From: Selaginella moellendorffii
Taxonomy: Eukaryota; Plantae; Lycopodiophyta
Assembly (NCBI RefSeq): GCF_000143415.4
Contig: NW_003314427.1
Location: forward strand, 144,378 to 208,377
DNA length: 64,000 bases
Reading direction: 5' to 3'
Shown: piece by piece, positions 2,863-64,000 of the stretch
How the letters are laid out: the number at the start of each line of letters is the position of its first letter
Numbering within the stretch: position 1 is the stretch's first letter
Notes under the pieces: generated by a model
What the model was told of the DNA's origin: nothing
Database searches by the model: none
The model's input: the letters and a program-made list of their open reading frames with translations, nothing else
Translations under genes and position numbers: made by a program

Positions 2863-2883
2863 TCCACTTATGATGCGAACAGT

Positions 2884-2950
2884 AACCTAATCTTGGCAGC
2901 TACCCTAACCCTAATCCTGACGGCTGCCCTAACCCTAACCAATCTCTAAT
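2884..2950. promoter_or_regulatory. Telo-box-like ACCCTAA cluster upstream of the ParB-like gene
   Basis: Several (A)ACCCTAA motifs; AAACCCTAA motifs sit at the equivalent position in copy 2 (52646-52668). Confidence 0.4.
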
Positions 2951-16912: not shown

Positions 16913-17088
16913 AAAGCTGTGCATAGGTAGTGTGTAAATGGTGTTCTTTGTAGATACACGCAAGATTTGTTCTATGGGAAAATTCCTGGCAATGGGAATC
17001 GAGCCAGGGATGGGCGGGTACTTAGTCGCCAAAAGTGACCTCTTCCATCTTCATTAAAGTAAGAAAATAGCCCTAGCTCCTCCCAGCG

Positions 17089-28300: not shown

Positions 28301-31300
28301 GCCTACCTCTATGACATTTCCCCTTTGTGTCTAAGTCTTTTGCCAAGACCAACACCGCTCTTTCTCATGCCAACCATCCGTTAACACTGCACCATAGAGG
28401 TCACACACAACTTCATGTCAAAGTTTTTTTCTTCTGGGAACACCTTTCCCATAACTTTAGCATGGCATATTTTGCCATCGATGAGATACCCTCTGTTCTC
28501 ATCCTTGGATCTTATGATCCCCCCCCCCCATCCTTTGTGGGGTACAACACACCTCAGTCCAAATGCTTCCATCAGTCCTTTTAGGACCATCCGTTGACTC
28601 TACTTGAGTCATCCAGCAGTTTTGGACTTGGTTAATCCACAGACCCGTAAGGTCCTACTTGTGAGGCACTAGCTCACTGGAATACACTTCTTGCATTCCT
28701 GTCCTACTCAAAAGGACTATTTTCACAAGTGTTACTCCGACACTTGATTTTGTTCTCTGGGGGCAACCTTTGCCCCTTAGGACTACTTGTCCATGTGATG
28801 AGAACACCAACTCATCCACTTAATACACCCCCAACTCCTGGGGTTGTTCCAGCATTTATTAGAGGTAGCCCCGGCTACCTTTTCAAGGACTTGAGTCCTC
28901 TTCCGTATTTGACCTCCCACGGTCATTACTTCTGGTCTCACATTCATGAGCACCAACCTCAACTATATGAGGAAAATCTTGTGACTCCTTTATTGCTTTG
29001 GAGTCTTTATCTTTCCCGTGATCCCAACTGTAGTTGTTTACCACAACTACATTAGCCAGTTTACTAAGTCAAACGCTCATCTGGATCACATCCTCAACTC
29101 TTTGAGGAAAACCATTTACTGTTCCCAAGATCCCAAAGTCGTTCCATTATTGGCCCTTTTCTATCCACCACCTCATCTACTAGTTCACACATGAACTGTA
29201 ATGGAGAGCCATGTCTTCCCGACTTGCTACTCCTCAAGGATAGGCCCACTCCTCGGACCTTCCGATGCCAACACTAGTGGTGATATACTTGAGCACCAAT
29301 AAAAGTCGGACTAAAGAACAGCTCCGATACCAAGTTGTAAGCGACTAAATTTTCCATTCTACTTTAGTCACTTAACCACACCTTTGACCACTTGGAGGAG
29401 TCTCATTCACAACCTCCATAAGTCCAATTCAGGACTTGGGGCTTGCTAGCCCCAGGAATGGCATCCATGCCACTCAACACTGGCACCTGGTCCAAGTGCT
29501 CTACGTGTCCGATCCCATGACCGACACTCAAAGGTACCACCGATATGGCAGCCCGTTACGCTAAGGCCATGCCCAATCACCTTTGCCACACTGTAGTCCA
29601 ATACCACTTGCATCACAGTCTTGGCTCTCCAAGACTGGGCCAACCATCCGTGAGTGGTCATCTCAGATCCACTCCTTAGCATCCTTAGGATGCCCACCGA
29701 CACGGGGAACAGCCTTCCCCAATGTCCCTCTGTCAGTCCCCCCTAAGTCCCTTTCTGCCCCTGGCCGTGTTTGCCAACACTGCCACTGGATCGAGGCCCA
29801 CAGGCCCGACCACTAAGTCCCACGGTCCTCTAGAACTTCCTCACCACACGACTGTGTCCTTGGTCACTACCCCAGAGGACTACTCCTCTTCCTTTCCACA
29901 GTCTGGGCCTTTGGGACAACATTTTGGAACACCGTGGCCTTACGCGAGCCACCTGGGTACTCTCCCCGCCTTCTGCCCTTGGGTGCTCTAGCCATGGGCT
30001 TAGAGCGAGGTTCCATTGAGCCACGCCTGGTATCCAAGTAGGTAGTGCCACCCACACTTGGACTGGGAGCATTGGCCAGTCGATCTCCCGGGGGAACTAG
30101 AGCCGGCTCTTGAACACTTCACCAAGCTACCCCGCTTGTCGGTCCGTGTTCACTCTAGTCTTGGACTTCCCAGTGGGCAGCTCATCACCCAACACTGGGT
30201 CCGGCCTTCCTGGGCCAAACTGGCCTTTCCTGGCCAAACTGGCTCCACTGCAGTCCTCCCCCCTACTATACTTTTGGAGCTCACCAAACCCCCTAGGGTC
30301 TGGGAGACGAACGCTTTGGGCTTTCACCCTCTCAGGCTCCAGACTCGGACTCGGACTCGGACTCGGACTCGGACTCGGACTCGGACTCGGATTCGGACTC
30401 GGACTCGGGCTCGGGCTCGGTCTTGGCCTCGGCCTCGGTCTCGGTCTCGGTCCCGATCTCGGTCTCGGTCTCGGTCTCGGTCCTGGTCTCGGTTCCGGTC
30501 TCGGTCTCGACTTCGGACTCCATCTCGGACTCCATCTCGGACTCCATCTCGGACTCCATCTCGGGTCCATCTTGGGTCCATCTCGGACTCCATCTCGGAC
30601 TCCATCTCGGGTCCATCTCGGACTCCATCTCGGACTCCATTTCGGGTCCATCTCGAGTCCACCTCGAACTCCATCTCGGACTCCATCTCGGACTCCATCT
30701 CGGGTCCATCTCGGACTCCATCTCGGACTCCATTTCGGGTCCATCTGGGGTCCACCTCGGACTCCATCTTGGACTCCATCTCGGGTCCATCTCGGACTCC
30801 ACTTTGGACTCCAACTCGGGTCCATCTCGGGTCCACCTCGGACTTCATCTCGGACTCCATCTCGGACTCCATCTCGGGTCCATCTCGGACTCCATCTCGA
30901 GTCCATCTCGGACACTCCCACGTGTCATGTGTTGGTCCTTTTGGGTCCCTTTTTGGAGCCTTGCCTTTTGCTCGCTTCGTGCTCGTTCCTCGAGCACTTC
31001 GTTGGGAGTTCCACTCCCGCTCTTGACTTTTCAAGTCGGAGCTTTTGGTCCAAACGTGTTACGCTCGTTTGGCTCTCGCTTCGGCCACTACCATGTGGCG
31101 CCCTTCCGGCTCCACTTTGGGGCCTAGGGATTTTGTGTCTCACATCAGCATCTTGAGCCTGAGCATGCTCAACTAACTGCCCAAACTCACTGATCACTTT
31201 ACTCAAATGATGACAAAATCGTGTTTGTAATGTCGTCACATGATGAACACGAAATAAAACATTTGCCACCACATTTGATTTTCCTGGATAATGCTTAATA

Positions 31301-34300
31301 GGAAGCTCCCCAAACTCCATGAGTTTGACCATCCAACAAACTTGCCTAGTGTTCAACTCCTTTTGTGTGAAAAGATACACAAGTGGTTTGTGATCTGTCA
31401 ACACCACAAACACTGCACCATAAAGATAGTGCTGCCACGTCCGCAAAGCATGAACAATAGAGAGTAACTCTTGCTTATATGTGGAATAACGTTGCTCCGC
31501 AAAATTCAAAATTTGACTCTCATATGCAATAAGCTGTCCCTCTTGCATGAGAACTCCTCCCAATGCATAATCACTTGCATCGCATGTTACCTCGTAAGGT
31601 TTTGATGGATTAGCAATGAAAAGCACTAAAGTCTCGCTCAACAATCGTTTCAGAGCCACAAAACTCTCCTCTTGTGGCTTCGTCCACTCGAATGGCACAT
31701 TCTTGCATAACAACTGTGTCAAAGGAATAGCCACCTCTGCAAACTTATGCTAGAAATGTCGGTAGTAACTAGCCAGACCAAGAAAACTACACAACTCAGC
31801 CACTGTATTTGGTGTAGGTTAGATTTCCACCACAGCCACTTTCCTGGGATCCGTCTTGACACCCTTAGATGTCACAATACGGCTTAGATATTCCACCTCC
31901 AACTTTGTAAACTCACATTTGCTCTTCTTCGCATAAAGTTTGTTGTCTCGGAGTAACAAAAGAACTTTGCGCAAATGCATCTTATGCTCCTCCATATTCT
32001 TGCTGAAAACAAGAATATCGTCCAAGAAAATCTCCACAAACTCATGAAGATAATGCCTAAATACCTCCATCATCAACTGAGTAAATGTGGCTGGTGCATT
32101 CGTCAAACCAAACGGCATAATTGTAAGCTCAAAATGTCTGAAGCTTGTGTTAAATGCCATCTTGGAGATAGATGCATCATCCATTACAATATGATGATAT
32201 CCACTCCTCAGATCAATCTTGGTAAACACTCGTGTTTCACCAAGCTTGTCTAGGATATCATCCACACATGGCATCGGCATCTTATCCTTCATTGTCTTCT
32301 TGTTCAAAGCACGGTAGTCAACACACATCCGCATTGAACCATCCTTCTTCTTCACAAGCAAGATTGGAGCACCAAATGAAGATTTACTTGGCTGAATAAA
32401 TTGAAACTCAAGTAACTCCTTGAACTTCTTGTTCCTCCCCATAACTTAACCGAAATGAACGCTAGTAAATTGGCCATGTCCCTGGCTCCAATGTAATCCC
32501 ATGCTCCACACCTCATAATGGAGGCAACCCATGAGGAAATTCGGAAAAACATCAGAAAACTCATCAAGTACATCCCATATTGCTGCTTCTCCCCCACACA
32601 TGCCTTGGTCCCCCAAGTCACGAAGAAATAGCAAGTGACTCAAAAGTGCTTTTCCATTACGACAAGCCCGCTTCAAAGATGTAGCAAAGAGCATAACAAC
32701 TGGTGGTTGAACACCCTCTCCAAAGCACACATCTTTAACACCACCGTACTCCAGCGAGACATGCTTAATACTCCACTTTACCTCTCGATTCACCTTCACT
32801 AACCATGGCATCCCAAGAATGAGATCCACACGATGGATATCCGCGAGATAAAAAGTCTCCACAAGTGTGGTTTTGCTAACCAACACTTCTAGCCCCTTGA
32901 CACAAGCATCGAAATGCTGAGCAGAGGTAGCTGCACCTTCCACTGTGTATAGAAGAACCCCTTCTGTGACTAGGCCATGCTCCGTAACAAATTTTGCCAA
33001 AACAAAGTTGTCATCACTCCCACTATCCAGTAAAATCTGCATTGGATTGCCACGAAACACACCCTTCAGCATTAAAGCTGATTCACGAGTATCCTCGAGC
33101 TCCATCTTGTTCCACACACAGTTGAACTGATGAGCAATGATCGAAAGTCTCTTCCTCTAACCAGAATGGTCGTTCTCAGCATCCTCACGCTGCAAAGTTT
33201 GCAACTTTTTAGTATATAACTTACCGTGAGTAGAAGATTGGCCATTCTTCTTGTCCTGTTGCTTGTTCTTCAACTATAGACAATTAGCTTTGTAGTGTCC
33301 AAGTTTGCCGCATTGATGACAACCTTGTCTATAATTCTTCACAAAGAACTTCTGCTTCTTGGACCCCTTTGCATCCCAAGTAGTCACCACTGACTTCAAC
33401 TTGTGATGCTTTTTCCCATCCTTGTGTCCACGACGATCATCATGACGATTCTCGATAGAAAGACTCCGCAAACGCTTGCGAGACTTGTGCTTGTCATTAT
33501 CAAGTCGATGAGCCACATCAAAGAGCTCCTCTAAACTCTTTGTAGGCTGAGAATGATGCAAGTGTTGCCGCATGCTCTCACTATGAAGGCCATTAATGAA
33601 GTAAGACTTGTTCTGATCTGGATCCTTCGTTGGAACACGACTAATCAAGCGAGTAAGCTTCTTAATATAGTCCCCAAGCGTCATTTTCCCTTGCTGGAAA
33701 TGTCAAAGTTCTATACTAGCATTCTCCACATTGTAATGAAGGGAAAAATGTAAATAAAAAGCAGCCTCAAACTCATCCATGGTAGACACTAGTGGTTTCT
33801 TATCCGCAACATGAGACTCCTCAAGCCAATTCCACCATCGAAGACCTGCATCACGTAAAACCATCGGAATAGCCACTAAAGCCTCTACATCTAGAGTTCC
33901 CTTAACAACCAAAAACTTCTTCACATTGGCTAGCCAAACGAGACACCCGTCCACACCACCATCACCGGAAAAGGTTGGAGTCTTGAGTCTATCTACCAAA
34001 GAAGGCTTACTTGGAGCGCTACCATGTCTAGCCTTGAGTGCTTCAACACGCCCACGCATGGTATCCATCATGCCATGCATCTCATTTTGCATCTCTTGCT
34101 GATTTTGATTAAAGGCTTGCAGTTCATGAACCACATCTTGAATGGTCCAAATCTCTACAGCTTCATCGGCACCATCATCGGCACCACCATCGACAATAGG
34201 ATTCTAGCATTCAGCTTGGTCGGCCATCACAACCAACTCCTCTAATACCAATGTTATGATCCGGTGCAAAGAGACAGAGATCTAGCCACCCTAGACTATA

Positions 34301-34911: not shown

Positions 34912-37748
34912 ATGCTGTTTTATTATTAAATTTTCTGTAATATATAAATAATATCTTTTATATAGTTCAAAAAGTGTTTTTACTATATATTTACAATTTT
35001 AGAAAGATAAAATATATTATGTTTAAATAAACAATAGTCTATATGTGTTGTTTACCTTTTCACTATAGAATATGTTAAACCATCGCAGATATTTGCTAGA
35101 GTCTTGACTTTTAATGTTTAAATTTGTAAAAGTTATAAAAATAATTTAGAGTATATAACTAGATATTTAAAATATTTTTATTACAATATTAAGCATAATC
35201 TAAAACTGGGATTAGATTAATTATTTTAATAATTTTTTATTTGATTAAATTTATGTAGAAATGAAAATTCTTGAACTGTGACAAAGGTTTGCAAAAATTG
35301 CTTTGCCACTATAAAACTGAAAGAAGAAAAGAATGTACTGACTAACTATTATAAATATTGACAACCAAGACCTAGAGATAGAGAGTGGCTAGAATTTTTT
35401 TTTTCTAAGTTGGTTACTCCTCAAAATTTTACAATCCAAAAACTTAAATGATCATATTCAATATATCATTGAAAGGATGAAGAATCTATAGAGGTGTCTT
35501 TTGAAGACTATTATAAAGATATGATACACTAAATATTACAAGCCAATTTTATAAAATCTTGATCTTAAGATCGAAAATCCTTCTCAAACTTATTATAAAG
35601 CTCCTCTATTTTTTATAGTAGTGAGAATATGTCTAGATCACCTAGTATCCTTAACATCTTTGTAGTGGACATTTATAAAATCTTAGAAATCTCTACTATA
35701 ATTTGTAATTTGTTAATATCGGCTAACCTAATATTGTGTATAGCATACAGAAAATGCATATTAGCTTAGCCCAAAAACCCTAACATATATAGAATCAAGT
35801 GGTGATATCAAAATCCTTATACTAATAATAGTATATGACATCATAATTATACATCTAAACTTTATATTATCCCCTCTTTTTGGAAGGATGAAAGGCAGTT
35901 AGGGTCCTTTTATTAATGGGCCAGGATTTAGATGAAGGAAGAGGCATTAGTGGATTTGTAGGTGGTGCAATTTGTTTATGATTCCTTTATATAAAGTGTT
36001 TTAGCAATTGCATAGCAACCTATTGAATATTGTTTATAAACTTGTAATCCAACATGCTATAACACTTGATATAGTCCCTTCCATTGAACAAGAACTCTTT
36101 TAAACAAACCATATAAGATTAAGAAAACAAGCCAAAATCAAATCCTCCACTTTATACTCTATAGATGGAAAATGATAAAAATTATAGTGCTATTGTTGTC
36201 CCATATAGATGTAGCACACGTGGTTTTGACCATTTATCCTATGGTGATTTACCATAGGATAACACCACAAAGCAGAACTTAAACCCTTCATGTGCCACGT
36301 GACAGATGCCATGTGTCACATGCCACGTGTCCAAAGGAATGTGGTGCAGAACCCGAGGTTCAGGGCCTTGGGCTACTAAACGAAGGAACGGTGCCAAACC
36401 CCCAAGCATGGAGCCAAGGAGTGATGGAACCAGACCACGGAGCAACTCCCGATCATACAGCCCAAGGAGCAAAGGAATAGGAGCCTGGAGCGACTTGGAA
36501 CAGTCTTAGAGCAACTAGCATCCCAATGCTAGGACCAGCACGCAAAATGGAGCCAAATAAAGTCTGGCACTATTTCTGCATACCGGTGGCCTAACATGAG
36601 GATATGGGTACTCCACCAGCTAGTATGGAATGGAACTTGGGCTTAGACCCAAGCCAGACGCAGAACAAGGACAAACACGCAAGTGGGAACTAGACTATGC
36701 CTCAAGTTAGTCGGCCATGCCCAACCTACCCACTATCCCTACTATACATTTGGAACCCCCTATAGCCCCCCCCCCCCCCGCTATATTTAAACCCCAATGA
36801 ATCGTCTCTCGAGTCATTCCCTTTGTTTGCTTTCACCCCAAGCCTCCCTTAGTATCAGGAGTTAGTCTCTGGGATAAGCTCGAAACTTACTAAATATGGA
36901 ATGGTGATAGATTGCGAATTTGGATATGGGACGAACACCATTGTGTTCAGGACAATCTCTACATTCCGTAAATATGCCAAATGAGCAAATCTGGACACTT
37001 TCCATAAATAGCATTTGGGACCGAAATGAGACTAACACAAAAGGCATGATAGCGAGGGTGTTTGGCAGACATGGTAAGCTATCATTTAGCGATATTAAGG
37101 GACTAATTTCAATATGTGAGAGTTCTTACCAAGCCAGTGCAAGACAGAGCAAAAGAGAACTAAGAGCCAGGCCGAGTATGCTCAGCTAGAAACACATAGG
37201 AGTTCCTACCTTATGTCCATCTGGCTAAGTACAGATGCTAAGCCCAGTAAACTAACACTTGAACAAGAGGGGCTGATAAAGGGAACTAGCAATACCGACC
37301 TCCTGCCATTGTGGCAGTAAGGAAAGAGTGTCTGTAAGGATTAGCCAATAGGTAACTTTTGATACCCAAAGTCACATTTGCGACACTCTCCCCCTTAGGG
37401 AAGATCGACATCCTCATCAATGCATACTCGAGTTTAGACCACCGCCAAGGAAACAACTCCAAAAAGAAGTTCATAGTGATCACACTATGTGAGAAATGCA
37501 CCGACTTAAATGAGTTAGGAGGCACCCTCTTTGTCTAAGGCGGATGCGCTACCAGCTCAAACACCTTCCAGCCATCGCCGACAAGAAAAAGACCAACAGA
37601 GTCAGCCACCCTTGTTACTCTGAGTATCACCCAACTAACAAAAGTGTGATATGCCCCTACCCGCAAGGACATAGAGAGAGAAGCTAGAGGCCCCAACCCT
37701 CCTGAGCAAAGAAACCAAACCTGTCGGTAAGGTTTAGATAGACTACTG

Positions 37749-41661: not shown

Positions 41662-42812
41662 TGTAGCGCACGTGGTTTTGACCCTTTATCCTATGGTGAT
41701 TTACCATAGGATAACACCACGAAGCAGAACCTAAACCCTCTTTGTGCCACGTGACAGATGCCACGTGTCACATACCACGTGTCCATGCCACGTGTCCATA
41801 GGAACCCGAGGTTCAGGGCCTTGGGCCACTGAACGAAGGAACAGTGCCAAACTCCCAAGCGTGACGCCAAGGAGTGATGAAACCGGACCACGGAGCAACT
41901 CCCGAGCATATAGCCCAAGGAGCGAAGGGACAGGGGCCCGGAGTGACTTGGAACAGTCCTAGAGCAACCAGCATCCCAATGCCAGGACCAGCACGCAAAA
42001 CGGAGCCAAACAGAGTCTGGCGCTATTTCGGCATACCGGTGGCCTAACGCAAGGATATGGGTACTCCACCAACTAGCATGGAATGGAACTTGGGCTTAGA
42101 CCCAAGCCGGACGCAGAACAAGGACAGGCACGCAAGCGGGAGCTAGACTATGCCTCAGGTTGGTCGGCCATGCCCGACCTACCCACTATCCCTACTATAC
42201 ATTTGGAACCCCCCACAGCCCCCCCCCCCTTGAGGAACACACGCTTTGGGCTTTCACCCCAAGCCTCCCTTAGTATTAGGAGTTAGTCTCTAGGACAAGC
42301 TCGAAACTTACTAATTATGGAATGTCCCTAGATTGTGAATTTGGACACGGGACGAACACCATTGTGTTCAGGCCAACTTCTACATTCCGTAGATATGCTA
42401 AATGAGCAAATCTGGACACTTTCCATAATTAGCATTTGGGACCGAAATGAGACTAACACAAAGGGCATGATAGCGAGGGTGTTTGGCAGACACGGTAAGC
42501 TATCATCTAGCGAATATTGAGGGACCAATCTCAATATCGCGGGGGTTCCTAACACTAGCAAGTGCAAGCCAACATCATGAGTTTCTCATCACCGTGTCAA
42601 GTCTGCTTGACTAAATGACAACTTAGGATTTCCTTCCTTAGTGCCCTTCTGGTCTAAGTGCACATGTGATGACCAGTTTCTCAACTAGCTTAGGCGGAAA
42701 TTGATAACGGGTCCAGCAATACCGACCTCCTGCCATCGTGGCAGTAAGGTAAGAGTGTCTGTAAGGACTAGCCGACAGGTAACTTTCGATACCCGAAGTC
42801 ACATGCGCGACA
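41662..42812 (-). mobile_element. Solo LTR of family B nested in an element of its own family
   Basis: TGTAGCGCAC...GCGCGACA with a perfect TSD AAGGG. Confidence 0.92.
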
Positions 42813-44827: not shown

Positions 44828-47800
44828 ACAACATGGACAAGCTCATGCCACTCTCTATCTGACCAAACTCAAAACTAATCTAACATCAAGTTACTCAAGG
44901 AGCAATAGCAAGATTCCCCGAAAAAAAATTGAGCATTGTAACCTAAGTCTTTAATAGCAAGCTTAGACAAAATGGTATAGCGTCTCACCGCTATCCATCC
45001 CATAACTCACCACTTGTAAGACCATCATAACCAACATGCATCAAGGTAGGGACTCTTGCTTGCATAATGTGAACACGAGCAATGAGTCACACCTCGTTGC
45101 AGATCATCTTCCAAGAAGAGAAGATGATTTACGTGTTTGATCCTTCGTCCCTAATGACTCTCTTTTTTGTCTCATCTTTGACTAAACCTCAAACTTGCTT
45201 TCGCACTACCTTCAGTCCAATCCAAGAAATTTTTTATGAGAGAGCATGGTAATGACTACTTGAACCAATAGACTAATCCCTATAGTTTTGATCGATTCAC
45301 TTATAATCATGCTTAGGAAGGACCCACTAGTGCTGTGCTAAATAGCTACAGACTAGCCTATTTGCCACTCATAGCAAACCCAGGGAGGTTTGCTTTCACC
45401 CATGGTACATAGAATAACTCACGGAACCCCTGGAACAACTCATGGAACCATTGATAGGCTTACATTAATCTTGCCAACTCAAAGTGTAACCTTGAGTTGC
45501 TAATGTGCCTCACTCACGAGCCCAAGCACAAACTCATGCAAACAAAACATCTCAATCCATCTTATGAGCCCAAGAGCAAACTCATATTATTACAGTACAA
45601 GAAGGTAACCAAATCCATACCCAAGGAACAATTGCGAAGCCTTTGCACCAAAACATGTACCCACTCGGATCATCATTTTCATCTCTGCGTATGCAATGAG
45701 ACTAGTTGCCCAATCGCATTGGATAGTACTCGCCGAGACTCATCCTCTGATACCAAATGTAGCGCACGTGGTTTTGACCCTTTATCCTATGATGATTTAC
45801 CATAGGATAACACCACGAAGCAGAACCTAAACCCTTCATGTGCCACGTGATAGATGCCACATGTCACATGCCACGTGTCCAAAAGAATGTGGTGTGGAAC
45901 TTGAGGTTCAGGGCCTTGGGCCACTGAACGAAGGAACAGTGCCAAACCCCCAAGCATGGAGCCAAGGAGTGATGGAACCGGACCACGGAGCAACTCCCGA
46001 GCATACAGCCCAAGGAGCGAAGGAACAAGAGCCTAGAGCGACTTAGAATAGTCCTAGAGCAACTAGCATCCCAATGCCAGGACTAATACGCAAAACGGAG
46101 CCAAACGGAGTCTAGCACTATTTCGGCATACGGGTGGCTTAACGTGAGGGTATAGGTACTCCACCAGCTAGCATGGAATGGAACTTGGGCTTAGACTCCA
46201 AGCCGGATGCAGAACAAGGACAGGCATGCAAGCGGGAGCTAGACTATGCCTCAGGTTGGTCGGCCATGCCCAACCTACCCACTATCCCTACTATTCATTT
46301 GGAACCCCCCATAACCCCCCCCCCTTGAGGAACACATGCCCCAAGCCTCCCTTAGTATCAGGAGTTAGTCTCTAGGACAAACTCAAAATTTACTAAATAT
46401 GGAATGGTACTAGATTGTGAATTTGGACATGGGACGAACACCATTGTGTTCAAGCTAATCTCTACATTCCATAGATATGCCAAATGAGCAAATCTGGACA
46501 CTTTCCATAAATAGCATTTGGGACCGAAATGAGACTAACACAAAGGGCATGATAGCAAGGGTGTTTGGCAGACACGGTAAGCTATCATCCAGCGATATTG
46601 AGGGATTAATCTCAATATGCGAGAGTTCTTGCCAAGCCAGTGCAAGACAGAGCAAAAAAGAACTAAGAGCCAGGCCGAGTATGCTTAGCTAGAAACACAT
46701 AAGAGTTCCTACCTTATGTCCATTTGGCTAACTACAGATGCTAAGCCTAGTAAACTAACACTTGAACAAGAAGGGTTGATAAAGGGAACTAGCAATACCG
46801 ACCTCCTGCCATCATGGCAGTAAGGAAAGAGTGTCCGTAAGGACTAGCTGACAGGTAACTTTCGATACCCGAAGTCACATTCGCGACAATAGATATGGTA
46901 TAAATGTTCAATAGACTTTACTCAAACCAGTAGAAGAATGTTCATTAAATATTGATCTTAGAACATAGCATCAACAACTTGTGGCAATTATGAATATAAA
47001 CTCAACTTTATTAGTAATATCAGATCATGATTATATAAGAGTTTATATGATAAAATACTAATAAAACTCTACACCCCTATGACATATATATACTAAAGAA
47101 TGACAAAGAATTATCCCAATATGAATATTGAAAATTCATATATTTGATGAAGAAATAAATATTTTATCTTATGTATTTCCCAGATAGAGCAAAAGAAGAA
47201 AGCTTAAGCAAAATATAATTATACCTAAGTTTAAGCATCCAAATAAGAAAGACCCAACCTAGGCAACATTCATCATAGATAAGTGTAAAGCATTTAAAAA
47301 TGGTTATAAAATCATATAATATATAAGTAACACTTAAACGTGTTGGAAAATAACCCTTACTCACTATTGTATGCATTTTTTCTCCCGCCTATGATTGTTT
47401 GTGCAAAGTAGAGTTGTGAGAGTGATATATGCTTATCCTTACTCATGGCTTTAGGGTTTAAAGTTGATTTCTCTTCTATTCTCTTCTCATTCTTTTTCTT
47501 TTTCTTTTTCTTTTCTTTTCTATTGTAGTGCATGTGGTTTGTACCCTTTATCCTATAGTGATTTACCATAGGATAACCACAAAGTGGAACTTAAACCCTT
47601 TATATGTCATATGTCACATGCGATGTGCCACATGCCATATGTCCCAAGGACAATAGAGTGGAACCTAAGTTTTAGGACCTTGGGTTATTGAACGAAGGAA
47701 TAGAGGTAAACTCTTAAACATGGAGCTAAAGAGTGAAGGAACTGAAGTATAGAGTGACTTGGAACAATCCTAGAGCATCTAACATCATAATGCCAAGACC

Positions 47801-48330
47801 AACATGCAAAACGGAGATAAAAGGAGTTTGGTGCTATTTTAGCATATTAGTAACCTAATGTGAGGATATAAGTACTCCATTAGGGGCTGGGTAGTTTTTG
47901 AGTTAAGCTCAAGTCAATGAAAGTCAATGAAAGTCAATATAGTCCACCAAAGACAAAAGTTGATGTTCAAATGATTGGTTTGGGACAAACTAACAATTCT
48001 ATTCAAAACTTAAGACCTATTTTCAATCCAAGAAAAATCTAAATAATATAAGTCCAATAAGAAAATAAATATCATAAGTCAAAGAAGAAACTCTATAATA
48101 CCACTAAAAAATTCGACTAAAACAAAAACTAAACTTAGTCTTCTTCGGCATCCACATCCACAAAAGGAGGAGTTTGTATAGTATTATGCTTTCTAATTAT
48201 GGGCTCTTGTTGTATATGAGCTTGTGCCATTGCTTCTGCATAACATGGCAAATTATAGCCCACATCATTGATCCACCTAATATACACAACCATGATGAAA
48301 TTACCATAATCAGAAATTTATACTTTATTA

Positions 48331-51300
48331 TCACCTGTTATAAAGTGTCCCAAGAACACTTTCAAATGCACTCTCCTTCTCCAGTGCAAAAACTACATAG
48401 CCAATCTCTTTAGCCACTAGCACCATTGAACCAAAATCTGCTGTAGCATCAAACACAATCCCCTTAAAAGGTCAAAATAGCTTTAAGAGGATTTGCATGG
48501 CTTTTGGTGAATGGTGTTGATAGCCAAAGAACTCTATATGATAGTCCTCATCGATGACATTCGGGATCATGTCTGTTGAGCTATCATATCCTTGCAATGC
48601 CAAACCTACATGCTCATCAGCTCATGTAATACTATGATGGTAAGAGTAGTGGCAAAGAGCATGGTAGTTCCATGCTAAAACCTATAATGAAAAGAGGCAA
48701 TCAATTTAATATATGAAAAACAAGGAAATGCAAACCTTTTGGATTCGGCCACTTGCTCCTATTGTTTCGATGGGGATGTTTGAAAATAGGCAACCTAATG
48801 CAAACTTAACCAATTAGAGTCATCATTCTCCACTATCATTGCAAGAAGACCTCCCCAAAATAAAGAATGGGGAAGAATAACTAGCATAATACCCTCATAT
48901 TGCAACACCCTTGGATGCCACATCCACCACTTGAGAAATATGGTTCGGTTGAAGGATGTTCCAAGATGGAGTGTTGCTTTGTAAAGGTGGTAACCCATCA
49001 GGCAAATTAAAGAATGATGCCGAAGGTATTATTCATTCCCAATCCTTGCATCTATTTATGGAATATAAAAGACTCTTGGCTCACATTATTGGAAAGCAAG
49101 TAGTCCCCACTAACTATTTCCATGTTGCCAACACTTCCCTTAGGAGAAAGAGAGCAAACTTGAATAGTGTTTAAAACTGGGAAATATTAAAATTAATACA
49201 TATTTTATTCATACCTGTTTATGTGAAGCCGATGAAGATAACTCTTGGAGGTCATCCTCTATAGCAGTGGGGAGGGATGGAAAGAATGCATTTGTACGTC
49301 GGTATATAGAGTGCTAGTTGGTTTTTCCGACATCTACAACTAAATTACAATAAGCAAGGTCATTAGAAATCAAGTTCTTACTCTCTTGGACATCTTCACT
49401 ATAGAGCTACCTTCGTATATTTCAAGTAGTTGGGCTGGATGAGCAGTGGCAGTAAGATCTGGGGAATGAGTAACTACTATAGGATGAGATGGGGCAAGAG
49501 AGTTTTTAGCTAGGTTCTCCACTTGTTCCTCTTTGGTTTGCTCAATATAAATCTTGTCTTGTCCTGAGGCATCTCTACTCCTTCCAAAAGTGCCTCTATA
49601 ATAAAGTAAAAACATAAGTTATTGCTAAGAAGTTTTACTCATCAAACCTGAATGAATCTTGAAGTAGAAATTGAGCTCAAAAAGGTGACAATAGCATTTG
49701 CCTCCACAACTCCAAGTACCATGGATAAAGTTCTCACTCCCATGCAATGGGATAATGGAACTTTGGCTCATATATGCCAAACTTCTTCCCACTAGTTAAG
49801 AGCTTGAGAAAAACATTTGTTATGTACATTGGAGCACTTGGGCAATGATTTAAATACCTACAAAAGAGCCATGATTAAATAAACATGTCAATTTTTTACA
49901 ATATACCTATATGCCATATGGTGTGAGAAAAATGGTTGGCCCAGCTGGTTCTTGAAATCCATGGAGCTTGATCTACCATTAGGAAGCCATCCATCCCCAA
50001 GCTCTTGAAGGGAAGCTTAGACATATTCTAGAAGTGTTATGCTGGTGTGGGCACTAATAAAGAACTTCATATCCCATGCTTGAAGTAGCTCCTTAACAGC
50101 CACAATACTCTAAATGATATAGAGTTTCTCCTTCATTACATTCTCAAGTTTTCTCTCCAACCTTTTATCATTGTTATGATGCCAAGTGTTGAGGAGCTCT
50201 AAGCAAGAGGTTTGTTCGTTGAAGGAGAGCTTGTTTTTTGCGATGTTATAGATAAATTCTTTAGGTGCTTTACCATTTCTTGCAAGGATAGGGATTTCAA
50301 AGTGGAATGATAAAGATAAAAGCGATTAACTTACTAACACAAGAGCATATCTTTGCAATGCAATTTAGCTAATCTTTATCGTGTTGGATGTCCACAATCG
50401 CAAGTAGCTTTTTCACCTTTGACTTCTTTGAGTTCAAAATGTGTTACTCAATTTGTTGCAGTTCAAGGTTCTTTTGCCCCTCATCCATCACTTGTGTAAT
50501 CTTCAAGTATGAGTTTTGCTCCACCTTGACAATTGGCTATGCAAAAAAAGGATACCTTTGCCCAGACCACAACCAAAAAATCCATAGACACCTAATACTA
50601 AGTAAGCAACTTTTGGCCTTTACGTGTTACAAGCTTTGCTTGAATTGCTTCCATAACCTTGCAACTATACAAAAATCTGGATTTCCTTGAGAAAAAGCAT
50701 GCCAACATATCAAAGGTGCTTGATATCATGGACCAAGGTATGTGTCTGGAAAACAAATTGATTAAGCCTGTAATATAGTTGGTGAAAACAAAGGTCACTA
50801 GTAAGGGATTCTTACATATTGATGTTGTGACATGCCAGGTTGAGCCTCATAGCTTGGTTTTGATCCTTTGGCTCCACAAGTGTCACTAGAACACAAATAT
50901 GTCACTTGTTATTGTTCTAGAACTTCTCTTGGATACACCTCCAAAACGTTAGCCACCAATGGTTTCCATCAATAATGAAGAACATCTGGCCTACAAAGGC
51001 TTGTGTCTCCTTGTGGCACACCATCAAAGTATCAAATTTCTAAGATTTCCTTTGCCATATCTGATCCCAAATCTGCTCGATCTTGCGAGTAACCATGTCT
51101 ATACAATTTGTTCTGGGGAATGATGATGACACATTAAATGATCCAATAGTGTGCCCGAATCCAACTTTTGTGAAAAAGGTATAAATAACCATGTTGAGGT
51201 CGTAGGCTGAGTGCACCTAGTGACTCTGCTTAAGACATCAAAATAGAATCTGAAGATGTTGGGATCCTTCCAAGCCATTTCACCTAACACCCTATTGATA

Positions 51301-51981
51301 TGTCATTCTTGAGCTTGGACAATAGTCTCGCGTACTCGCTCATTCTTGACCATTGTAAACTCATAAATTTAGACTTTTCAGGAGGTCACCTAGCCCAGTA
51401 CTATTCAAACCCAAGGACACTTAACCCCAACTATTCCAAAACCTTTAACCGATTAGAAAAGGGGGTGCACTTTTATTCATGGGCTTTTTCCCTTTATATT
51501 TGAGGTCACAAAAATGAGGTGGTAACTATGCTAAAGGCTGACATGATTGTAAGCAACCAAAGAGAATGACTTGAGAGACGGTCCATAAAATTTCAAGAGC
51601 AACAGTATATTCACCATTTCCACCACCAAGATCTACCCCACCACCTATAGCACCAAGTGCCTCATTTCTGCCACCAAGTTCTACCCCACCACCTATGGCA
51701 CTAGGTGCCTTATTTCCACCACCACTAGCAACTTCTCCTACACTATACATAGGTTTTGCATTTTCACACTCTCTAGAACCATCTAGCTCCTGCATGCTCA
51801 CACCTGGATTAGGATCAACCATTGCTTGGATCTGGACACCATTATTCCCACCATGGTCTTCCTCCGAAGTAGTGCCTTGAACTTGTGAGGTGTCCCTAGT
51901 GAATCTAGCACAACGATCTAGTCGTTTTTCTAGAGAACGGGTTCATTGAGGTTGACCAGCATGCTTCTTCTATTGTGGCAT
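48331..51981 (-). pseudogene. Multi-exon ParB/Srx-like domain plus beta-class N4/N6 DNA methyltransferase-like protein
   Basis: ParB part WDQIWQRKS*KFDTLMVCHKETQAFVGQMFFIIDGNH (motif at 50956-50976). MTase part: FNLPDG (48994-49011), RVLQYEGIMLV, then HHSPKAMQILLKLF*PFKGIVFDATADFGSMVLVAKEIGYVVFALEKE (48370-48520). Many stops. Confidence 0.7.
51354..51596 (-). mobile_element. Solo Cassandra-type LTR, rearranged by a micro-inversion
   Basis: 51354-51503 is the reverse complement of most of the TRIM LTR, including the 5S core. The first ~40 bp of the LTR appear in + orientation at 51548-51587. Confidence 0.85.
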
Positions 51982-52059
51982 GATTTATATGTCTACATAA
52001 AAATGATAGAAAAAACTTGAGTAAATATTAAAAAAAAGTTTTGAAGAAAAATAGGAGGA

Positions 52060-52445
52060 ATTTCCTTGGCACTGGGAAGATCAATTTGTTGCCAAACCAA
52101 TCTTCCAGTACCAAAGGAACAAAAGAAAAAAGAAAAGGAGTAGCTCCCTTAGTGTTGGGAAGATCAATTCAGTGGCAAATCAATCTTCTAGTGTTGAGGG
52201 AACAAAAAAAAATAAGAAAAGAAGCAATTCCCTTAGCACTAAGAAGATTGATTTATTGCCAAACCAATCTTTTAGTGCCAAAGGAACAAAAAAAAGAAAA
52301 AAAGAAATAGTTCCTTTGGCACTGGGAAGATCGGTTCATTGTCGAACCGATCTTATAGCACCAACACAATGACAAGAAAAAAAAACCCAGAATCTGATAT
52401 GCTAGGAAAATTAGTTTGCTGCTGAACCAATCATTCTAGTGTGAA
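52060..52445. repeat. Array of 4-5 hairpin-forming units, ~83-bp period, A-rich spacers
   Basis: Unit 1 arms TTCCTTGGCACTGGGAAGAT and ATCTTCCAGTACCAAAGGAA; similar units start at about 52145, 52228, 52311 and 52400. Confidence 0.85.
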
Positions 52446-53059
52446 GTAGCCATGAGATGCAAGTTGCTTGTGAGATAGGAGTAAAAGATGGGGAGATGGA
52501 AAAGCAACAAATAGGGAGATTGAGAGGCATACCTTGAATGAGGAGTATCTTTCTAGTGTCTTGAAGAGCATCTAGCGTCCTGATTGAGATGCATCTTGAA
52601 GCACATTACGAGATTCAAGCATTTTTCTCTCGCCCTTCCTTGCTCAAACCCTAAGTGTAAAACCCTAAAAATTAACAGTCATAATCAATGATCACGATCA
52701 ATGGTCATGATTTTCATTCTCTCTAATGGCAATTGCTTTCTAGATTCTAGTGGTATGTCAATTTTTAACAATACTTTAATTTTGCAAATGGTAGGATATA
52801 TTTATTGGACAAATCCATTATGAACATAAATTTCATATGTTCTTCCCAAGGAGACAATTATTCAATTCTTTAGATATTAAGATATATGTAATTGATTGTG
52901 AGAGCAATAATATTGTTGAAATAAATGGGGTTATGAGTGAGAGGCACTGATAAATCACAAGAGTTTTAGCATTGATTGCTTATTCTCCCTCTCATCTCCA
53001 TACTCTTTTCCCTTCAAAAGAGTTTCATTTTTTTATGATAAGTGAGAGAGAGTCAAGCT

Positions 53060-55867
53060 CTAAAAGGTTGGTTCATGCATGGTTTTTCCTTGCACAAAGC
53101 TAACTATGTAAGGAGTGAAGGATGAAGTTGTTATTCTCTTCAGTGACGAAAGTGAAAAAGATGAATTTTGTGACATAACTTCCCAGATAAGTAGGTGCAT
53201 TTCTTCTAGATCAGTTTTTGAAGCAGTGGATAAAGCATTTTGGCAATCTCAATCATTACAATTAGAATTGAAGGATTTCTAGTACATAAGAGGTGAGGAG
53301 CTTTTGTTTTCCTATAATAGGAATATATTCTTTGAAATTCCACTGGCCAGTTTGTCAAGTAAGAAGAGGGGCATAGAGACGCATTTTGATCCACATAATT
53401 GGTGTAGGATACCACTAACATGCAATAAAGGAAGGAACTTGCTATGATTTGTTTTGCTTTTTGATTCAATTTTAAGGCTGCTATTACTATAAAGGCTGGG
53501 AAGAAAAGTGCCGCAACTCCAAAGTGCATTCAATAATCTGTACTAAAGGACTATGTGGTGGACAAACTGATAGCAAAAAAGAGTTCACAAAGAATAGCTT
53601 GAAAGACATATTTTGAAATATAGAACCCGTGACAAATTTAAACAAATATAAGATTAATGCTTAACTCTACTTTGTCACTAGAAATACTTTTTTTTTTTGT
53701 AGAATAAAGAACTGGATGCAAGAAAGGCAAGATGGAAAGCTTCAATCTAGATTGGATGTGATTTTAGAATTAAAAAGAAAATATCTTTATGAGTTTATTC
53801 ATAGGAACTTGTTCATTGGTTAAGTGACTTTGAACATTCAACACTCTTTCATCTTTAAAATGTCCACCCTTGGTCTTGCTTATGGTGTGGACCTTGTACA
53901 TCAAATGGATATGGATGGAGATGGATTTGGTTAATTCTTGAATCTATTTCAACCATATGGAATGAGTTTCAAGCTGGTCAATAATGGAAGCCTATGTTTA
54001 TAATCACAAGTAAGTGGCTTTTCATTTTTTAAAGATTTTATATTGAGTTATATCATAACCATTTTTTCTATAGGTTGTAGTGCAACTTGATTATAACTAT
54101 AGCCAAATTCAAGGTTCAAGATTTCCAAGCTCAAATTGTCTTTTGAACATATATGTCTGAGGTTGTTGAACAGCAAATCAGGAAGAAACCCAACTTCCAT
54201 GGTTTCATCATAAATGCTATTGGTGTTAATTGGTTGGTTGTATAACAAGTATTTGGAGGTGAAAAAAATCAGTCATTATAAGGTAGAGAGAAGAGTTGTG
54301 AGTTTCATTGGGCAAAGAGTGTCAACAAACATTGCCAATGCATCAAGTCTAACTTCCATCACAAGTCCAAGCAACTTTGTCGAGAATGAATGGATGCACA
54401 AACTAAAGAGGAGCACGAGACAAAGGTAAATGAGATGTGCATATGGTGGTATGAAAAAGATAAAGTGCCAATTAAACACCTTCTATAAATAGAATGTTGG
54501 TTTGCATGGTGGGAAATATGAATGTTTCAATAGAGCCATTATATTCTTTATGTAAGTTTTTTCTCATTTTCTTTTCTTGTCACATTCAAATGTTGTATTT
54601 TTCCTAGGATCAACCACTTGATGACATTGCACTTAAACCAATAATTAATCTCTTTGAGAGCAAATATTGGAGTTGGAGAGCTTTCGAAATAAGGAAAGGA
54701 AAAATGTCCCTCTATAAAGCTATACTCTCCAACCTCACTAGATCTCTTGACCAGTCATCAAAAGCTTTGGCTGCACAGGAAATAAAGTTTATTAGTACAA
54801 ATCTAAACTTAGACAAACTTCGATAGTGGGTTGGTAGAAGGACAACACTAGTAATAAAGTCAATGTTTAAGATGGTGGAGGAAGTTGTTACTGGAACTTT
54901 TATAGAATCAAGTTATGAACCACTTGAGGACATGAGGATAGCCCATATGAAGTGTCGACAGACATTTGATGGGCTTAACATCACTCCTTCTAACTCTCAC
55001 CATCTAGAGCTTGACTACCATTCTGTTCTACGACACCAGAGAAAAATTAAGGAATATGGAGTGGAGGAAGTGTCAATTGTTACACAAGTAAATCCAGTGC
55101 TAAAGGTTGAGAAAATTATTGCTCATGAGCCAGTTTCTTATATTAACTGGGCAATTCGAAGAGTCAGTGCCAAGAGTAATGCGTGTTACTCCAGATTGAT
55201 TAGGAGTCGAGGTCAGTGTTTTGCATTTGTGCACTCAAGTTCAAGTTCTTTAGCAATACCATGTTTCTGGGGCTATCGAGATCTAGAGGTAAAGGGTTGC
55301 CAATCAAGCTGGATTTATTGTTGTGGGACTAATGTTACTTATATAAACAGGATCCATAGCTCAATTATTTCGAAGCCAGATTTTGTGCTAAAGGGGTGGC
55401 TAGTTGAGCAAAGCTGCAATCATTTGGTTTTAAGCTGAAGACTTCCTCAAATGTTGCTATTGATACTGCTATGCCATCAATGTTAACATTAGATCAACAT
55501 ACATGACCAACTAGAAATGAGATGTTGTACAACATAGGTCTTCCATTTCAAAAGGTGTACAAGATAAGATCAAGTTGGCAAAGGCGTTGAAGTGCACAAT
55601 TACAAAGATAAACTACATTAATGTCGTGGCTAAAGAGTTTGTTGTTGTGCTTGAGTTGTCAAAAGGTATGAACTACACTATCAAAATTTGTGAAAATCCA
55701 TCTTGTACCTGTGCAGATTTTACATAAAGGAAGAACAGGAGAAAGGCATATTTAGTTTGCAAGCACATCTATATATTTTTATGCAGGAACTAAACCAAGA
55801 TCCTAAGATTGACCATCACATCTACTAGGTAAGCCTTACAATTGTAGAGCTTGAGAAGTGTTTTTAG
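53060..55867 (+). pseudogene. Decayed Mutator-like transposase with SWIM (paralogue of 3997-7101)
   Basis: KKRGIETHFDPHNWCRI matches KRKGMETKQDVHNWCKI; shared exon start GATCAACCACTTGA (54608 vs 5824); EEVVTGT and WAIRRV; SWIM PSCTCADF..CKH at about 55700-55770. Confidence 0.85.
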
Positions 55868-56453
55868 ATTTCTTTTAGTGTTTGAATCTATATTTATATT
55901 TATATTTTATTGGTTGAATTTACTTGGAAATATAGATTAAATCAAATTTTGAAAAATAAAAGGATGTTAGTTCAAGACAAACCAATGTTTTTCTTATGTT
56001 TGAGAAGTCATGACCTCAGCTCATGAGCTCATAAGCTCAAAACCTATCCAGAGTTGTATGGTGTGGAATTTGGGCTTAAGCCCAAGCCAAATATAGAACA
56101 AAGACAGACATACAAGTGGAAGTAAGAATATATCTATGCCTTAATTTGGTTGGCCATGCCTAATTTACCTATTATCCCTATTATACATTTAGAACCCCTT
56201 ACATCCCCCCCCTTGAGGAATACACATTTTGGGCTTTCACCTTTAGCCACTCTTAGTATTAGGAGTTAGCCTCTAAGATTAACTTGAAACTTACTAAATA
56301 TGGATTGCGAAATTGGATGTAGAACCAACACTATTGTGTTCAAGACAATCTCTACATTCTATAGATATGCCAAATTAGCTAATCTAGACACTTTCCATAA
56401 ATAGCAATTGAAACCGAACGAGACCAACACAAAGGGCATGATAGCAAGGGTGT

Positions 56454-61556: not shown

Positions 61557-62030
61557 AAAAGAGAGAGTACTTGAGGAGAAGATGAAGATTTTATGGATGA
61601 GTTTTTCCAGAAAAAAAACAAGACTAACTAGCAACTCAAAATCATCACAATTTATAATTCTATAAAATCACAGAGGTGAGGGTGCCAATCCCCTTACCTA
61701 TAGCATGTAAAGTGATCACTACTACACCCCCTTTTAACACACTTATGAGTGATTACAAATGTATAGGGTAAAATATGTTATTATACCTTCTAGCATATGT
61801 TATACATTTAGATTAATCAAGTATAAATATATTTAAAAATTTAAAAATTTCTTAAACAGCTATCTTCTGGATATTTATAAATTATAAAAATGTTTACAGT
61901 TATAAACTTTCTTAAGCACCCATTCTTGCCATAAATAATCATATTACCTTACTGTGCTGGGTTGAGTGATGGGCTCTCCTATCATATATGTGATGATAGG
62001 AGAGTGGCAATTCTTTGCTGTCCTGCTGTA

Positions 62031-62733
62031 NNNNNNNNNNNNNNNNNNNNNNNNNNNNNNNNNNNNNNNNNNNNNNNNNNNNNNNNNNNNNNNNNNNNNN
62101 NNNNNNNNNNNNNNNNNNNNNNNNNNNNNNNNNNNNNNNNNNNNNNNNNNNNNNNNNNNNNNNNNNNNNNNNNNNNNNNNNNNNNNNNNNNNNNNNNNNN
62201 NNNNNNNNNNNNNNNNNNNNNNNNNNNNNNNNNNNNNNNNNNNNNNNNNNNNNNNNNNNNNNNNNNNNNNNNNNNNNNNNNNNNNNNNNNNNNNNNNNNN
62301 NNNNNNNNNNNNNNNNNNNNNNNNNNNNNNNNNNNNNNNNNNNNNNNNNNNNNNNNNNNNNNNNNNNNNNNNNNNNNNNNNNNNNNNNNNNNNNNNNNNN
62401 NNNNNNNNNNNNNNNNNNNNNNNNNNNNNNNNNNNNNNNNNNNNNNNNNNNNNNNNNNNNNNNNNNNNNNNNNNNNNNNNNNNNNNNNNNNNNNNNNNNN
62501 NNNNNNNNNNNNNNNNNNNNNNNNNNNNNNNNNNNNNNNNNNNNNNNNNNNNNNNNNNNNNNNNNNNNNNNNNNNNNNNNNNNNNNNNNNNNNNNNNNNN
62601 NNNNNNNNNNNNNNNNNNNNNNNNNNNNNNNNNNNNNNNNNNNNNNNNNNNNNNNNNNNNNNNNNNNNNNNNNNNNNNNNNNNNNNNNNNNNNNNNNNNN
62701 NNNNNNNNNNNNNNNNNNNNNNNNNNNNNNNNN
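62031..62733. other. Assembly gap (N run)
   Basis: Run of N. Confidence 1.
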
Positions 62734-64000
62734 AGAGAATGTTTTGTTTTCCATACTTACATGGTAATGTGAGGTAAAAGAATGCCCCTTTTATAATCTG
62801 CACTGCATTAAGTCAAACATCTAAGGTACAACTAATCAAGACTTTTTTCAAATCCAAATATTCTTATTTATGTGATCTCATATTTCCTACTTTTGCTATG
62901 CCAATGATCTTAAACTTGGAATAATAATAATAATAATACTCAAGAATCTTTGTATATTTTTCAAAATCTAAACTTTGCATCTAATATTGGTTCAAATAAA
63001 TTAGATTAAAATGGTGTTTAACACCTAGATTAAGAAAGAATATTCTCAAAATTGAGTGCTTAACTGCTACATGGAGGAAAACACACCTTAGTCGTTAATG
63101 CAAATCAGACTTTACTGCATACAAGTATCTAGGTATCTGGATAGGTGGTACATGTGTTAACATAAAGCATCCCACCTAGATCTCTATGATGTTCGGTGTG
63201 CCCCAAGTTTCCTAAGGTAAAAGTCTTGGTGCAGCTGTAAATCTCTTTTTAACCTTTAACCTTTATACTTTGAAATTATGGTCTAAAAGAATATTCTCAG
63301 AATAACCTTTAATTTTGTGTCAAATGAAATAATATATTAAAGAAGATAGCTCACCTTGGTGCAACATGGCTGCCAAGCAATGGTTTCTTCATTCACCCAC
63401 ACTTTCTTGCAACGCTCAAGATATAAGGTGCCTCTAGCAGCCAGATCATCATTGTGTCCTTGAATGTTATTTATGGAAATAGTGTGGATTTCCACACTAT
63501 AGATGCTACAATTGATCAAGTTTGGTCAACACCTCTTAGTCTAGTTATTTTCAACAGTTATATCTTCTTTCTATAAAAGCATAGATACCAGTGACAAATT
63601 TATTATTATTGAGTTTAATTTTATGGTTGTGGAGAATCTCCAAGAAGAAAAAGATTTCTGTCTTCATCACTTTTGAAGGGGTTAATACCTTCAATCTAGA
63701 ATTGAGCCCAGCAATGGCAAGAGAGTTTATATGGAGTGAACTAATCTAGGTTTGGGTTTGGCTTAAGATCACTTATCCTTAACCATATCTAAACTTAGAT
63801 AATGAAAGGATAATCCAAGCACTTAGCCAAAAGCCATAAACATCACAAACACCTATTCCATCCTTTGTTAATTTCTGGAGGATTGGTTTGTTAAATGTTA
63901 TGCTAAACCTTATAAACTTACCCTCCGTAGCACATGATAATCATGAAGGTAAAATGCTTCCTTGTCTAAATCTTGAGTATAAACTGACAACTATCAAGGC

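Follow-up and report, generated by a model that had tools for sequence, protein, structure and literature searches.

Does the lycophyte Selaginella moellendorffii carry a working gene in which a ParB/sulfiredoxin (Srx) domain is fused to a beta-class DNA amino-methyltransferase? An initial annotation of 64,000 nucleotides (NCBI RefSeq assembly GCF_000143415.4, contig NW_003314427.1, positions 144,378 to 208,377; this whole stretch is called the window) placed such an intron-containing gene at 48331-51100 on the minus strand, held that the open reading frame (ORF) track had missed it, and likened it to the N4-methylcytosine (4mC) or N6-methyladenine (6mA) writers of rotifers and Marchantia. Here, we found that the locus is a pseudogene, and that its intact relatives, instead of being host writers, appear to be the accessory gene of a DNA transposon bounded by terminal inverted repeats (TIRs) and target-site duplications (TSDs). 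The segment 47883-56057 is very probably an old, dead copy of this cut-and-paste Selaginella element of ~8-9 kb, with its ruined second gene, a ParB/Srx plus PF01555-like accessory gene, at 51368-48138 on the minus strand. In itself, the locus is a commonplace decayed repeat and matters only because it points to a family whose proteins are now annotated just as hypothetical.

Decay of the window locus

All of the peptides quoted in the initial annotation were found on the minus strand at the places it had given: FFIIDGNHWW in the stop-to-stop piece 51039-50920, FFNLPDG in 49032-48898, RVLQYEGIMLV in 49028-48798, and HHSPKAMQILLKLF in 48621-48475, which is followed by a TGA and then by PFKGIVFDATADFGSMVLVAKEIGYVVFALEKE (48471-48334). 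Since none of ten window pieces taken singly matched a Pfam family at E<=10, sequences from outside the window were needed to judge the peptides. A phmmer comparison of the pieces with the first 79 retrieved proteins gave nothing significant beyond the N-terminal domain. By tblastn, an intact S. moellendorffii gene (L003:7090-10706) was collinear with ~51368-48138 of the window in each of its eight exon blocks, with E-values of 1e-13 to 5e-51 and 40-60% identity; at the nucleotide level, the window is 80-95% identical to scaffolds of S. moellendorffii assembly GCA_000143415.2. This similarity is not due to chance, and the collinear matches to L003, together with the transposon-copy structure described below, led us to reject the explanation that the peptides come from chance ORFs. 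The interval first proposed for the gene falls short at both ends: exon 1 reaches to ~51368, and the last exon, at 48257-48138, lies outside it.

Comparison with L003 showed how each exon block has fared on the minus strand. The remnant of exon 1, which carries the ParB/Srx-fold domain (50815-51368; 55% identity to L003 e1, E=5e-51), reads ...WDQIWQRKS*KFD...FFIIDGNHWW... and contains ~6 stops, one frameshift and a change of the motif Arg to Trp (AGG to TGG) that turns the ParB motif into DGNHW. From the middle, helical part of the gene, blocks e2-e4 survive as remnants at 49680-50775, which were recognized by tblastn high-scoring segment pairs (HSPs) with E-values of 2e-16 to 8e-50 and hold ~8 in-frame stops and one frameshift. 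They are followed at 49212-49376 by a small conserved block, FFPSLPTAIEDDLQELSS, which lies upstream of the methyltransferase-like domain and matches residues 53-106 of L003 e6 with 51% identity. In the next remnant (48709-49162), which includes FFNLPDG as its motif IV-like block and RVLQYEGIMLVILP as a strand block, collinear HSPs in differing frames together with three-frame translation revealed one stop and at least three frameshifts. In the exon remnant for methyltransferase motifs X-I-II, the predicted S-adenosylmethionine (SAM)-binding half (48334-48696; 61% identity to L003 e7, E=9e-44), two in-frame stops were found, one after SIT (~48622-48624) and the TGA at 48472-48474. The last exon remnant (48138-48257; ...LPCYAEAMAQAHIQQEPIIRKHNTIQTPPFVDVDAEED, then a stop) is 55% identical to L003 e8 (tblastn, E=1.6e-13).

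In total, ~17 in-frame stops at positions that are coding in L003 and at least five frameshifts inside exon blocks were counted, with both counts depending on the exact exon borders. Stops fall within conserved motifs (PLCRL becomes LF*CL, RKSREFD becomes RKS*KFD, and LELFCPP becomes LKLF*PF), and the TGA of LKLF*PF corresponds to a Cys codon (TGT or TGC) in the paralogues. The first Gly of motif I is replaced by Asp, encoded by GAT in the window as against GGA in L003 and L001 and GGT in L002, which bears out the initial view that the D of ATADFG is one G-to-A change from Gly; a stop lies 12 codons upstream of this position. The locus is a pseudogene because these stops and frameshifts lie within L003-coding positions, and with its ~17 stops, at least five frameshifts, and Arg-to-Trp and Gly-to-Asp changes, it cannot make a protein. 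The several short introns of the initial annotation were partly right: L003 does have introns at the matching positions, and many of the gaps are instead stops or frameshifts.

The pseudogene belongs to one of two diverged copies of a two-gene unit in the window, copy A (1299-7101) and copy B (47883-56057), which share ~45% amino-acid identity. In both copies, a ParB-type gene on the minus strand diverges from a SWIM-finger transposase-like gene on the plus strand. In copy B, the decayed transposase gene (53095-56033, plus strand; predicted DDE-type with a C-terminal SWIM-like finger) is 83-84% identical in nucleotides to L003 2137-5418 and to L001, and its fragmented reading frames are collinear with copy A by tblastx. 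A left TIR remnant (56034-56057, minus strand; ...TGGATAGGTTTTGAGCT...) was recognized by comparison with the left end of L003, and a right TIR remnant (47883-47960, minus strand; ...CTCAAAAACTACCCAGCCCC, ending at 47883, pattern match at 47889-47904) is the same end as L003 10907-10984. Within the right TIR remnant region lie 2.8 copies of a subterminal tandem 10-mer, TCATTGACTT (47911-47938). A TSD of copy B was not recognizable in the window.

Intact copies and relatives

A word-based search with the methyltransferase exon of paralogue L001 returned one protein, P0080, which led to six S. moellendorffii places (L003-L008) that hold a unit of ~8.85 kb with 99.4-99.9% mutual identity. The units have sharp shared ends, imperfect TIRs of ~40 bp and TSDs of 8-9 bp; in L006, for example, AACAGAGT is duplicated on both sides. 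In most of these young copies the exon blocks of both genes are open, and NCBI gene models of 698-738 aa cover L003:6857-10831. The intact gene has about eight exons that make up an N-terminal ParB/Srx-fold domain with the motifs PLCRL...DGNHR, a helical middle region and a C-terminal methyltransferase-like domain. The unit is a cut-and-paste DNA transposon, and it has probably been active recently, since near-identical S. moellendorffii copies have both genes open. The transposase shows the pattern D...D (FMADAAGANW)...CEFH...E (NLSESKH) followed by a C-terminal SWIM-like finger, and on this sequence pattern it may be Mutator-like or Zisupton-like. The SWIM finger of copy A matched its Pfam model with 17.0 bits against a cutoff of 19.6 (E=0.004, below threshold), and a database search with the transposase found three unnamed Logan proteins only.

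An exhaustive phmmer search with the conserved part of copy A matched 72 proteins at E<=1e-3, with named relatives from Selaginella, the ferns Adiantum capillus-veneris and A. nelumboides, and the liverwort Riccia; none of the 72 has a Pfam domain. Fern models support the view that both domains sit in one gene, as the initial annotation had supposed for one transcript. The fern model P0090 contains GNHR, motif IV and motif I together, the models P0090, P0088, P0048 and P0051 each combine GNHR with motif IV and/or motif I, and the Selaginella gene models span both parts.

Several further observations concern the family. TSDs pair across scaffolds, with GTGATTGC at the left of L004 and the right of L007, and GTGAATGAG at the left of L003 and the right of L005, which suggests that the assembly jumps from one near-identical copy of the element to another. 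A dispersed repeat of ~1.2 kb occurs at least three times in the window (36210-37408, 41662-42810 and 45758-46886) and is found again at L001:10890-12048, inserted inside the ParB-methyltransferase gene. The Riccia sorocarpa protein P0063 (L015:10001-11972) has a stop right after VDYVDDPPI; it was rejected as a full family member on the grounds that it ends just past the DDPPI motif and lacks the methyltransferase C-half, and no transposase was found within 10 kb. A homologue of the ParB/Srx-like domain at L013:9944-10507 (an ENA ERZ24794494 contig) reads VWDGNPQ in place of GNHR. It is probably fungal, as the contig carries HET-domain and laccase genes, and no methyltransferase part is visible in it.

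The N-terminal domain has a predicted ParB/Srx fold

The fold of the N-terminal domain was examined in the intact paralogue L003. An AlphaFold2 model of L003:7447-7926, built from a 69-member alignment, reached a mean predicted local distance difference test score (pLDDT) of 94.4 and a predicted template modelling (TM) score of 0.88. When this model was compared with the PDB by Foldseek, the top ~45 matches were all ParB, Noc, KorB, sulfiredoxin, PadC, SbnI or serine kinase structures, that is, members of the ParB/Srx superfamily (probability 0.9-1.0, E ~1e-2, TM-score 0.35-0.59). Against the BFVD viral models, phage ParB proteins came out on top (E=1.1e-4), and ParB-methylase fusions were included among the matches. 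DGNHR is near-invariant in the family alignment, with its G and N conserved in >=90% of members, and by sequence it may be equivalent to the GERR/GCHR motif. On these models, the N-terminal domain is a true ParB/Srx fold, which agrees with the assignment that the initial annotation made from the motif.

The C-terminal domain resembles PF01555 methyltransferases

The methyltransferase exons of L001, L002 and L003 gave three independent matches to the Pfam profile PF01555 (N6_N4_Mtase), which scored 19.2-20.2 bits with E-values of 6e-4 to 1.3e-3; in each case the aligned part of the 221-position profile was 169-218. In tblastn searches, the L003 exon matched plasmid DNA methylase genes (IncI plasmid; E=3e-5, 41% identity over 64 aa) and phage methylases (~1e-3), and the matched plasmid and phage proteins are bona fide PF01555 members. 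An hhalign comparison of a Selaginella-plus-fern alignment with four PF01555 methylases over motifs X-I-II gave probabilities of 95.7-96.7% and E-values of 9e-9 to 5e-10. With a profile made from five PF01555 methylases, the spliced L003 domain scored 46.8 bits and the window remnant 48621-48334, with X at the stop, scored 19.9 bits. The candidate SAM-binding motifs in intact copies read DATAGFGS, DCTAGSGS and EFGCGT. Taken together, these sequence comparisons support the earlier identification of the last block as the motif X-I-II region of a PF01555-type amino-methyltransferase.

The catalytic side of the domain is less regular. Motif IV reads NLPD in the window and L001, DLPD in L003, and DLPF or DVPF in the ferns, which departs from the canonical (D/N/S)-P-P-(Y/F/W), and the initial doubt about this motif was justified. 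In L003 and P0090, ~150-180 residues separate the motif IV-like block from motifs X-I further downstream, which is the order of the beta class and the one that had been proposed. In the upstream half, the best local alignment pairs IDFIFFDLP with IDFILTDPPY. The Foldseek ranking for the fern C-terminal model lists M.BceJIV, M1.HpyAVI and M.RsrI, which is suggestive only. As read from its sequence, the C-terminal domain is beta-class-ordered and PF01555-like, with the SAM-binding half kept and a non-canonical catalytic motif.

Palindromes and a proposed mode of action

Between the divergent genes of L003, an array of ~7 palindromes of the GTCGGTTCGCGCGCGAACCGAC type (L003:6050-6720; full unit ~GATGTCGGTTCKYGYGCGAACCGAC) was found, and five exact GGTTCN6GAACC sequences occur at 6189-6631, compared with 0.02 expected. 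In the window, the intergenic region of copy B holds an 83-bp tandem repeat of 3.5 units (52064-52358, no strand assigned) with a palindrome copy in each unit, within which four palindrome units are kept. Three of the four are spoiled by CG-to-CA/TG changes, and only 52333-52348 (GGTTCATTGTCGAACC) is still palindromic; this decay is the pattern expected for methylated CpG. A second array, TTGACTTTCG x3.7, adjoins the right TIR of the young element and is retained in the window.

We propose that the ParB-methyltransferase protein may be a transposon accessory factor, comparable to ParB-methylases and orphan methylases that phages and plasmids carry. Repeats within the element would serve as loading sites for the ParB-type part of the protein, most likely the palindrome array between the divergent genes, much as operators and parS sites do for KorB and ParB. 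At the loaded sites, the methyltransferase-like part is predicted to bind SAM, and it would then either methylate the element DNA or serve as a non-catalytic module; either mode would tune the expression of the element or counter silencing by the host. This mechanism, taken by itself, is a tentative proposal that we would place somewhat short of an even chance.

Alternative explanations

Several results weigh against reading the locus as the remains of a transposon-borne ParB/Srx and PF01555-like gene with such a function. None of the paralogue exons reached the PF01555 gathering score of 26.7 bits, the fern proteins gave no PF01555 match, and PF02195 (ParBc), the other profile named in the initial annotation, was not matched at E<=1-10 by the window pieces, copy A, L001, L003 or the fern proteins. 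A profile of the N-terminal family likewise found no ParB among PDB sequences, with the fold visible by structure comparison only. The upstream, catalytic half aligned with known methylases at an hhalign probability of 6%, and 65 of 500 shuffles scored as high, which leaves its position and a short motif to suggest a catalytic half. Structure prediction, confident for the N-terminal fold, was poor for the fern C-terminal domain (pLDDT 48), and the Foldseek matches of that model to beta-class methylases were not significant. Methyl transfer may have been lost in the family, with motif IV lacking the second Pro and, in Selaginella, also the aromatic residue. The Selaginella gene models were judged by their span, and the transposase matched no Pfam transposase model at E<=1, including the MULE models PF10551 and PF00872. 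The ratio of nonsynonymous to synonymous substitution between L003 and L001 (~0.4 in the methyltransferase exons and 0.55 overall; Fisher p=5e-4) is weak evidence for purifying selection on the methyltransferase exons, since L001 itself is a deleted copy. Finally, palindrome binding, binding of nucleoside triphosphates (NTPs) and an anti-silencing role of the protein are all putative.

How, then, might the locus and its family be read otherwise? That the locus is a live, intron-rich host gene overlooked by the ORF track is favoured by the real introns of intact paralogues at corresponding places; set against it are the ~17 stops, several of them in PLCRL, RKS-EFD and LELFCPP, the frameshifts within exon blocks, the loss of key residues, and the decay of the neighbouring transposase and palindromes. 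With the tblastn map of these breaks and the TIR/TSD-bounded, near-identical copies elsewhere, this explanation has next to no probability left, and we rejected it. A different question is what the family protein does, and it could be a catalytically active DNA amino-methyltransferase that writes 6mA or 4mC marks on the transposon or the genome, with the window copy as a dead member. The well-kept SAM-binding motifs of intact copies, the aromatic residue retained in fern motif IV (DLPF, DVPF), the selection on the methyltransferase exons and the fact that the nearest sequence matches are real DNA methylases all speak for a writer. However, Selaginella motif IV is DLPD or NLPD and not (D/N/S)PP(Y/F/W), Pfam thresholds are unmet, and the known eukaryotic 4mC writers have SPPY/TSPPY and clear PF01555 matches (10.1101/2021.02.12.428880; PMC8885841), so that we regard active methylation as unlikely.

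The degenerate motif IV would also fit a role in which the ParB-type domain is a nuclease or an NTP-dependent DNA clamp that helps transposition in the manner of mudrB, with the methyltransferase-like domain as a non-catalytic SAM- or DNA-binding scaffold. Many members of the ParBc family are nucleases or cytidine triphosphate (CTP)-dependent clamps and the fold matches include such proteins, the conserved subterminal 10-mers adjoin the gene's end of the element, and Mutator-type elements with helper ORFs are known (PMC6446971). On the other hand, motifs X-I-II are retained better than a mere scaffold would predict, and a ParB-like nuclease role is a candidate only; a helper of this kind seems to us improbable. 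Bolder still is the idea that SWIM-type DNA transposons of lycophytes and ferns carry a working self-directed epigenetic module, in which a CTP-dependent ParB-type clamp on the element's own palindromes brings a 6mA/4mC writer. If this were true, the mark would protect the bidirectional promoter from being closed by the host's 5-methylcytosine (5mC) silencing, land plants would harbour an anti-silencing system built from phage parts, and the window would hold a fossil copy of it; we consider it very unlikely. The reading that we prefer for the locus remains that of a dead transposon copy with a ruined accessory gene.

Relation to known systems

Phages and plasmids have DNA methylases with a ParB-like domain as well as orphan PF01555 methylases, among them the IncI leading-region protein WP_000086129 and Mycobacterium phage 'DNA methylase' proteins. 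These share with the Selaginella gene the domain types and their N-to-C order. They likewise have the beta-class order, with motif IV before motifs X-I, are borne on mobile elements, and are the best sequence matches of the Selaginella methyltransferase exon. The Selaginella gene differs in being eukaryotic, with about eight exons and a helical middle region of ~300 aa, in having DLPD (DLPF in the ferns) instead of DPPY as motif IV together with sub-threshold Pfam matches, and in its carrier, which here is a cut-and-paste transposon.

The closest eukaryotic precedent is found in red algae, where Plavaka, Mutator and Zisupton elements carry PAG2 (PF01555 plus SET) and PAG3 (ParB-like plus 2-oxoglutarate (2OG) oxygenase) (10.1101/2025.02.11.637652). 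These genes are also passengers of DNA transposons with PF01555-type and ParB-like domains, are mostly degenerate copies, and have inverted-repeat arrays next to the ParB-bearing gene, as in the Selaginella element. In the red algae, however, the two domains are in separate genes with SET or 2OG partners, whereas here they are fused in one gene; the host lineage is also different, and the two families are compared by description only. Other passengers are VANC of the VANDAL/Hiun elements, SET in HarbingerS and oomycete MuDR elements, and TET/JBP in fungal KDZ elements (PMC12730594, PMC6446971). VANC-type passengers are extra genes on Mutator-type or related elements, and their presumed target is the epigenetic state of the element that carries them, reached via its repeats. 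They show no relation in sequence or fold to the Selaginella protein, whose function we only infer.

Among eukaryotic host genes, Marchantia DN4MT1a/b and bdelloid N4CMT share a PF01555-type ancestry, and Marchantia is also a non-seed land plant. Those are single-locus genes with a canonical (T)SPPY, clear PF01555 matches and no ParB domain, whereas the Selaginella gene is transposon-borne and ParB-fused, has a degenerate motif IV, and lacks both (T)SPPY and a PF01555 match of that quality. Fusions of a ParB domain and a helix-turn-helix (HTH) with a chlorophyte-type Dam domain have been described from chlorophytes and chytrids (Iyer, Zhang and Aravind 2016, PMC4738411), and they too are eukaryotic fusions, of a ParB-type domain with a phage-origin domain of adenine-methylase type. 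However, that methylase is M.EcoKI/M.TaqI-like (DpnM type) and not of the PF01555 beta class, and the fusions have not been described as transposon passengers or from land plants. Our literature searches found no description of a ParB-methyltransferase transposon family in land plants.

Few transposons bring along modifiers of chromatin or DNA (VANC, SET, TET/JBP and the red-algal PAG genes), and those that do show how mobile DNA fights silencing by the host. Described here is a lycophyte and fern family that fuses ParB/Srx and PF01555-like methyltransferase domains in one intron-bearing gene beside a conserved palindrome array. The family is a concrete candidate for non-5mC DNA methylation, or for a ParB/KorB-like clamp, used by a plant transposon.

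Copy A and other features of the window

Copy A belongs to a different subfamily from copy B. Its ParB/Srx first-exon ORF (1299-2135, minus strand; ...MFQIIDGNHRYGAW) is intact, keeps DGNHR, and is 95% identical in nucleotides to S. moellendorffii L002; the gene is cut off at ~1345 by a long terminal repeat (LTR)-like repeat. The transposase-like gene of copy A (3997-7101, plus strand; SWIM finger at ~6920-6995) is less decayed than its counterpart in copy B. The intergenic array of copy A (2565-2864) consists of ~13 repeats of a 22-bp unit, CTCAATCTCTCCCACTCGCGCG, and is unlike the array of copy B.

LTR-like repeats with abundant short tandem motifs lie at 1-1341, where one truncates copy A, and at 23929-25523 and 29574-31144. 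ORFs for a Ty3/gypsy-type gag, protease and reverse transcriptase at 30925-34134 are flanked by LTR-like repeats. A run of N at ~62000-62750 marks an assembly gap. At 15429-16926, ORF translations point to host-gene-like exons with a FYVE zinc finger ahead of a Ysc84/DUF500-like region.

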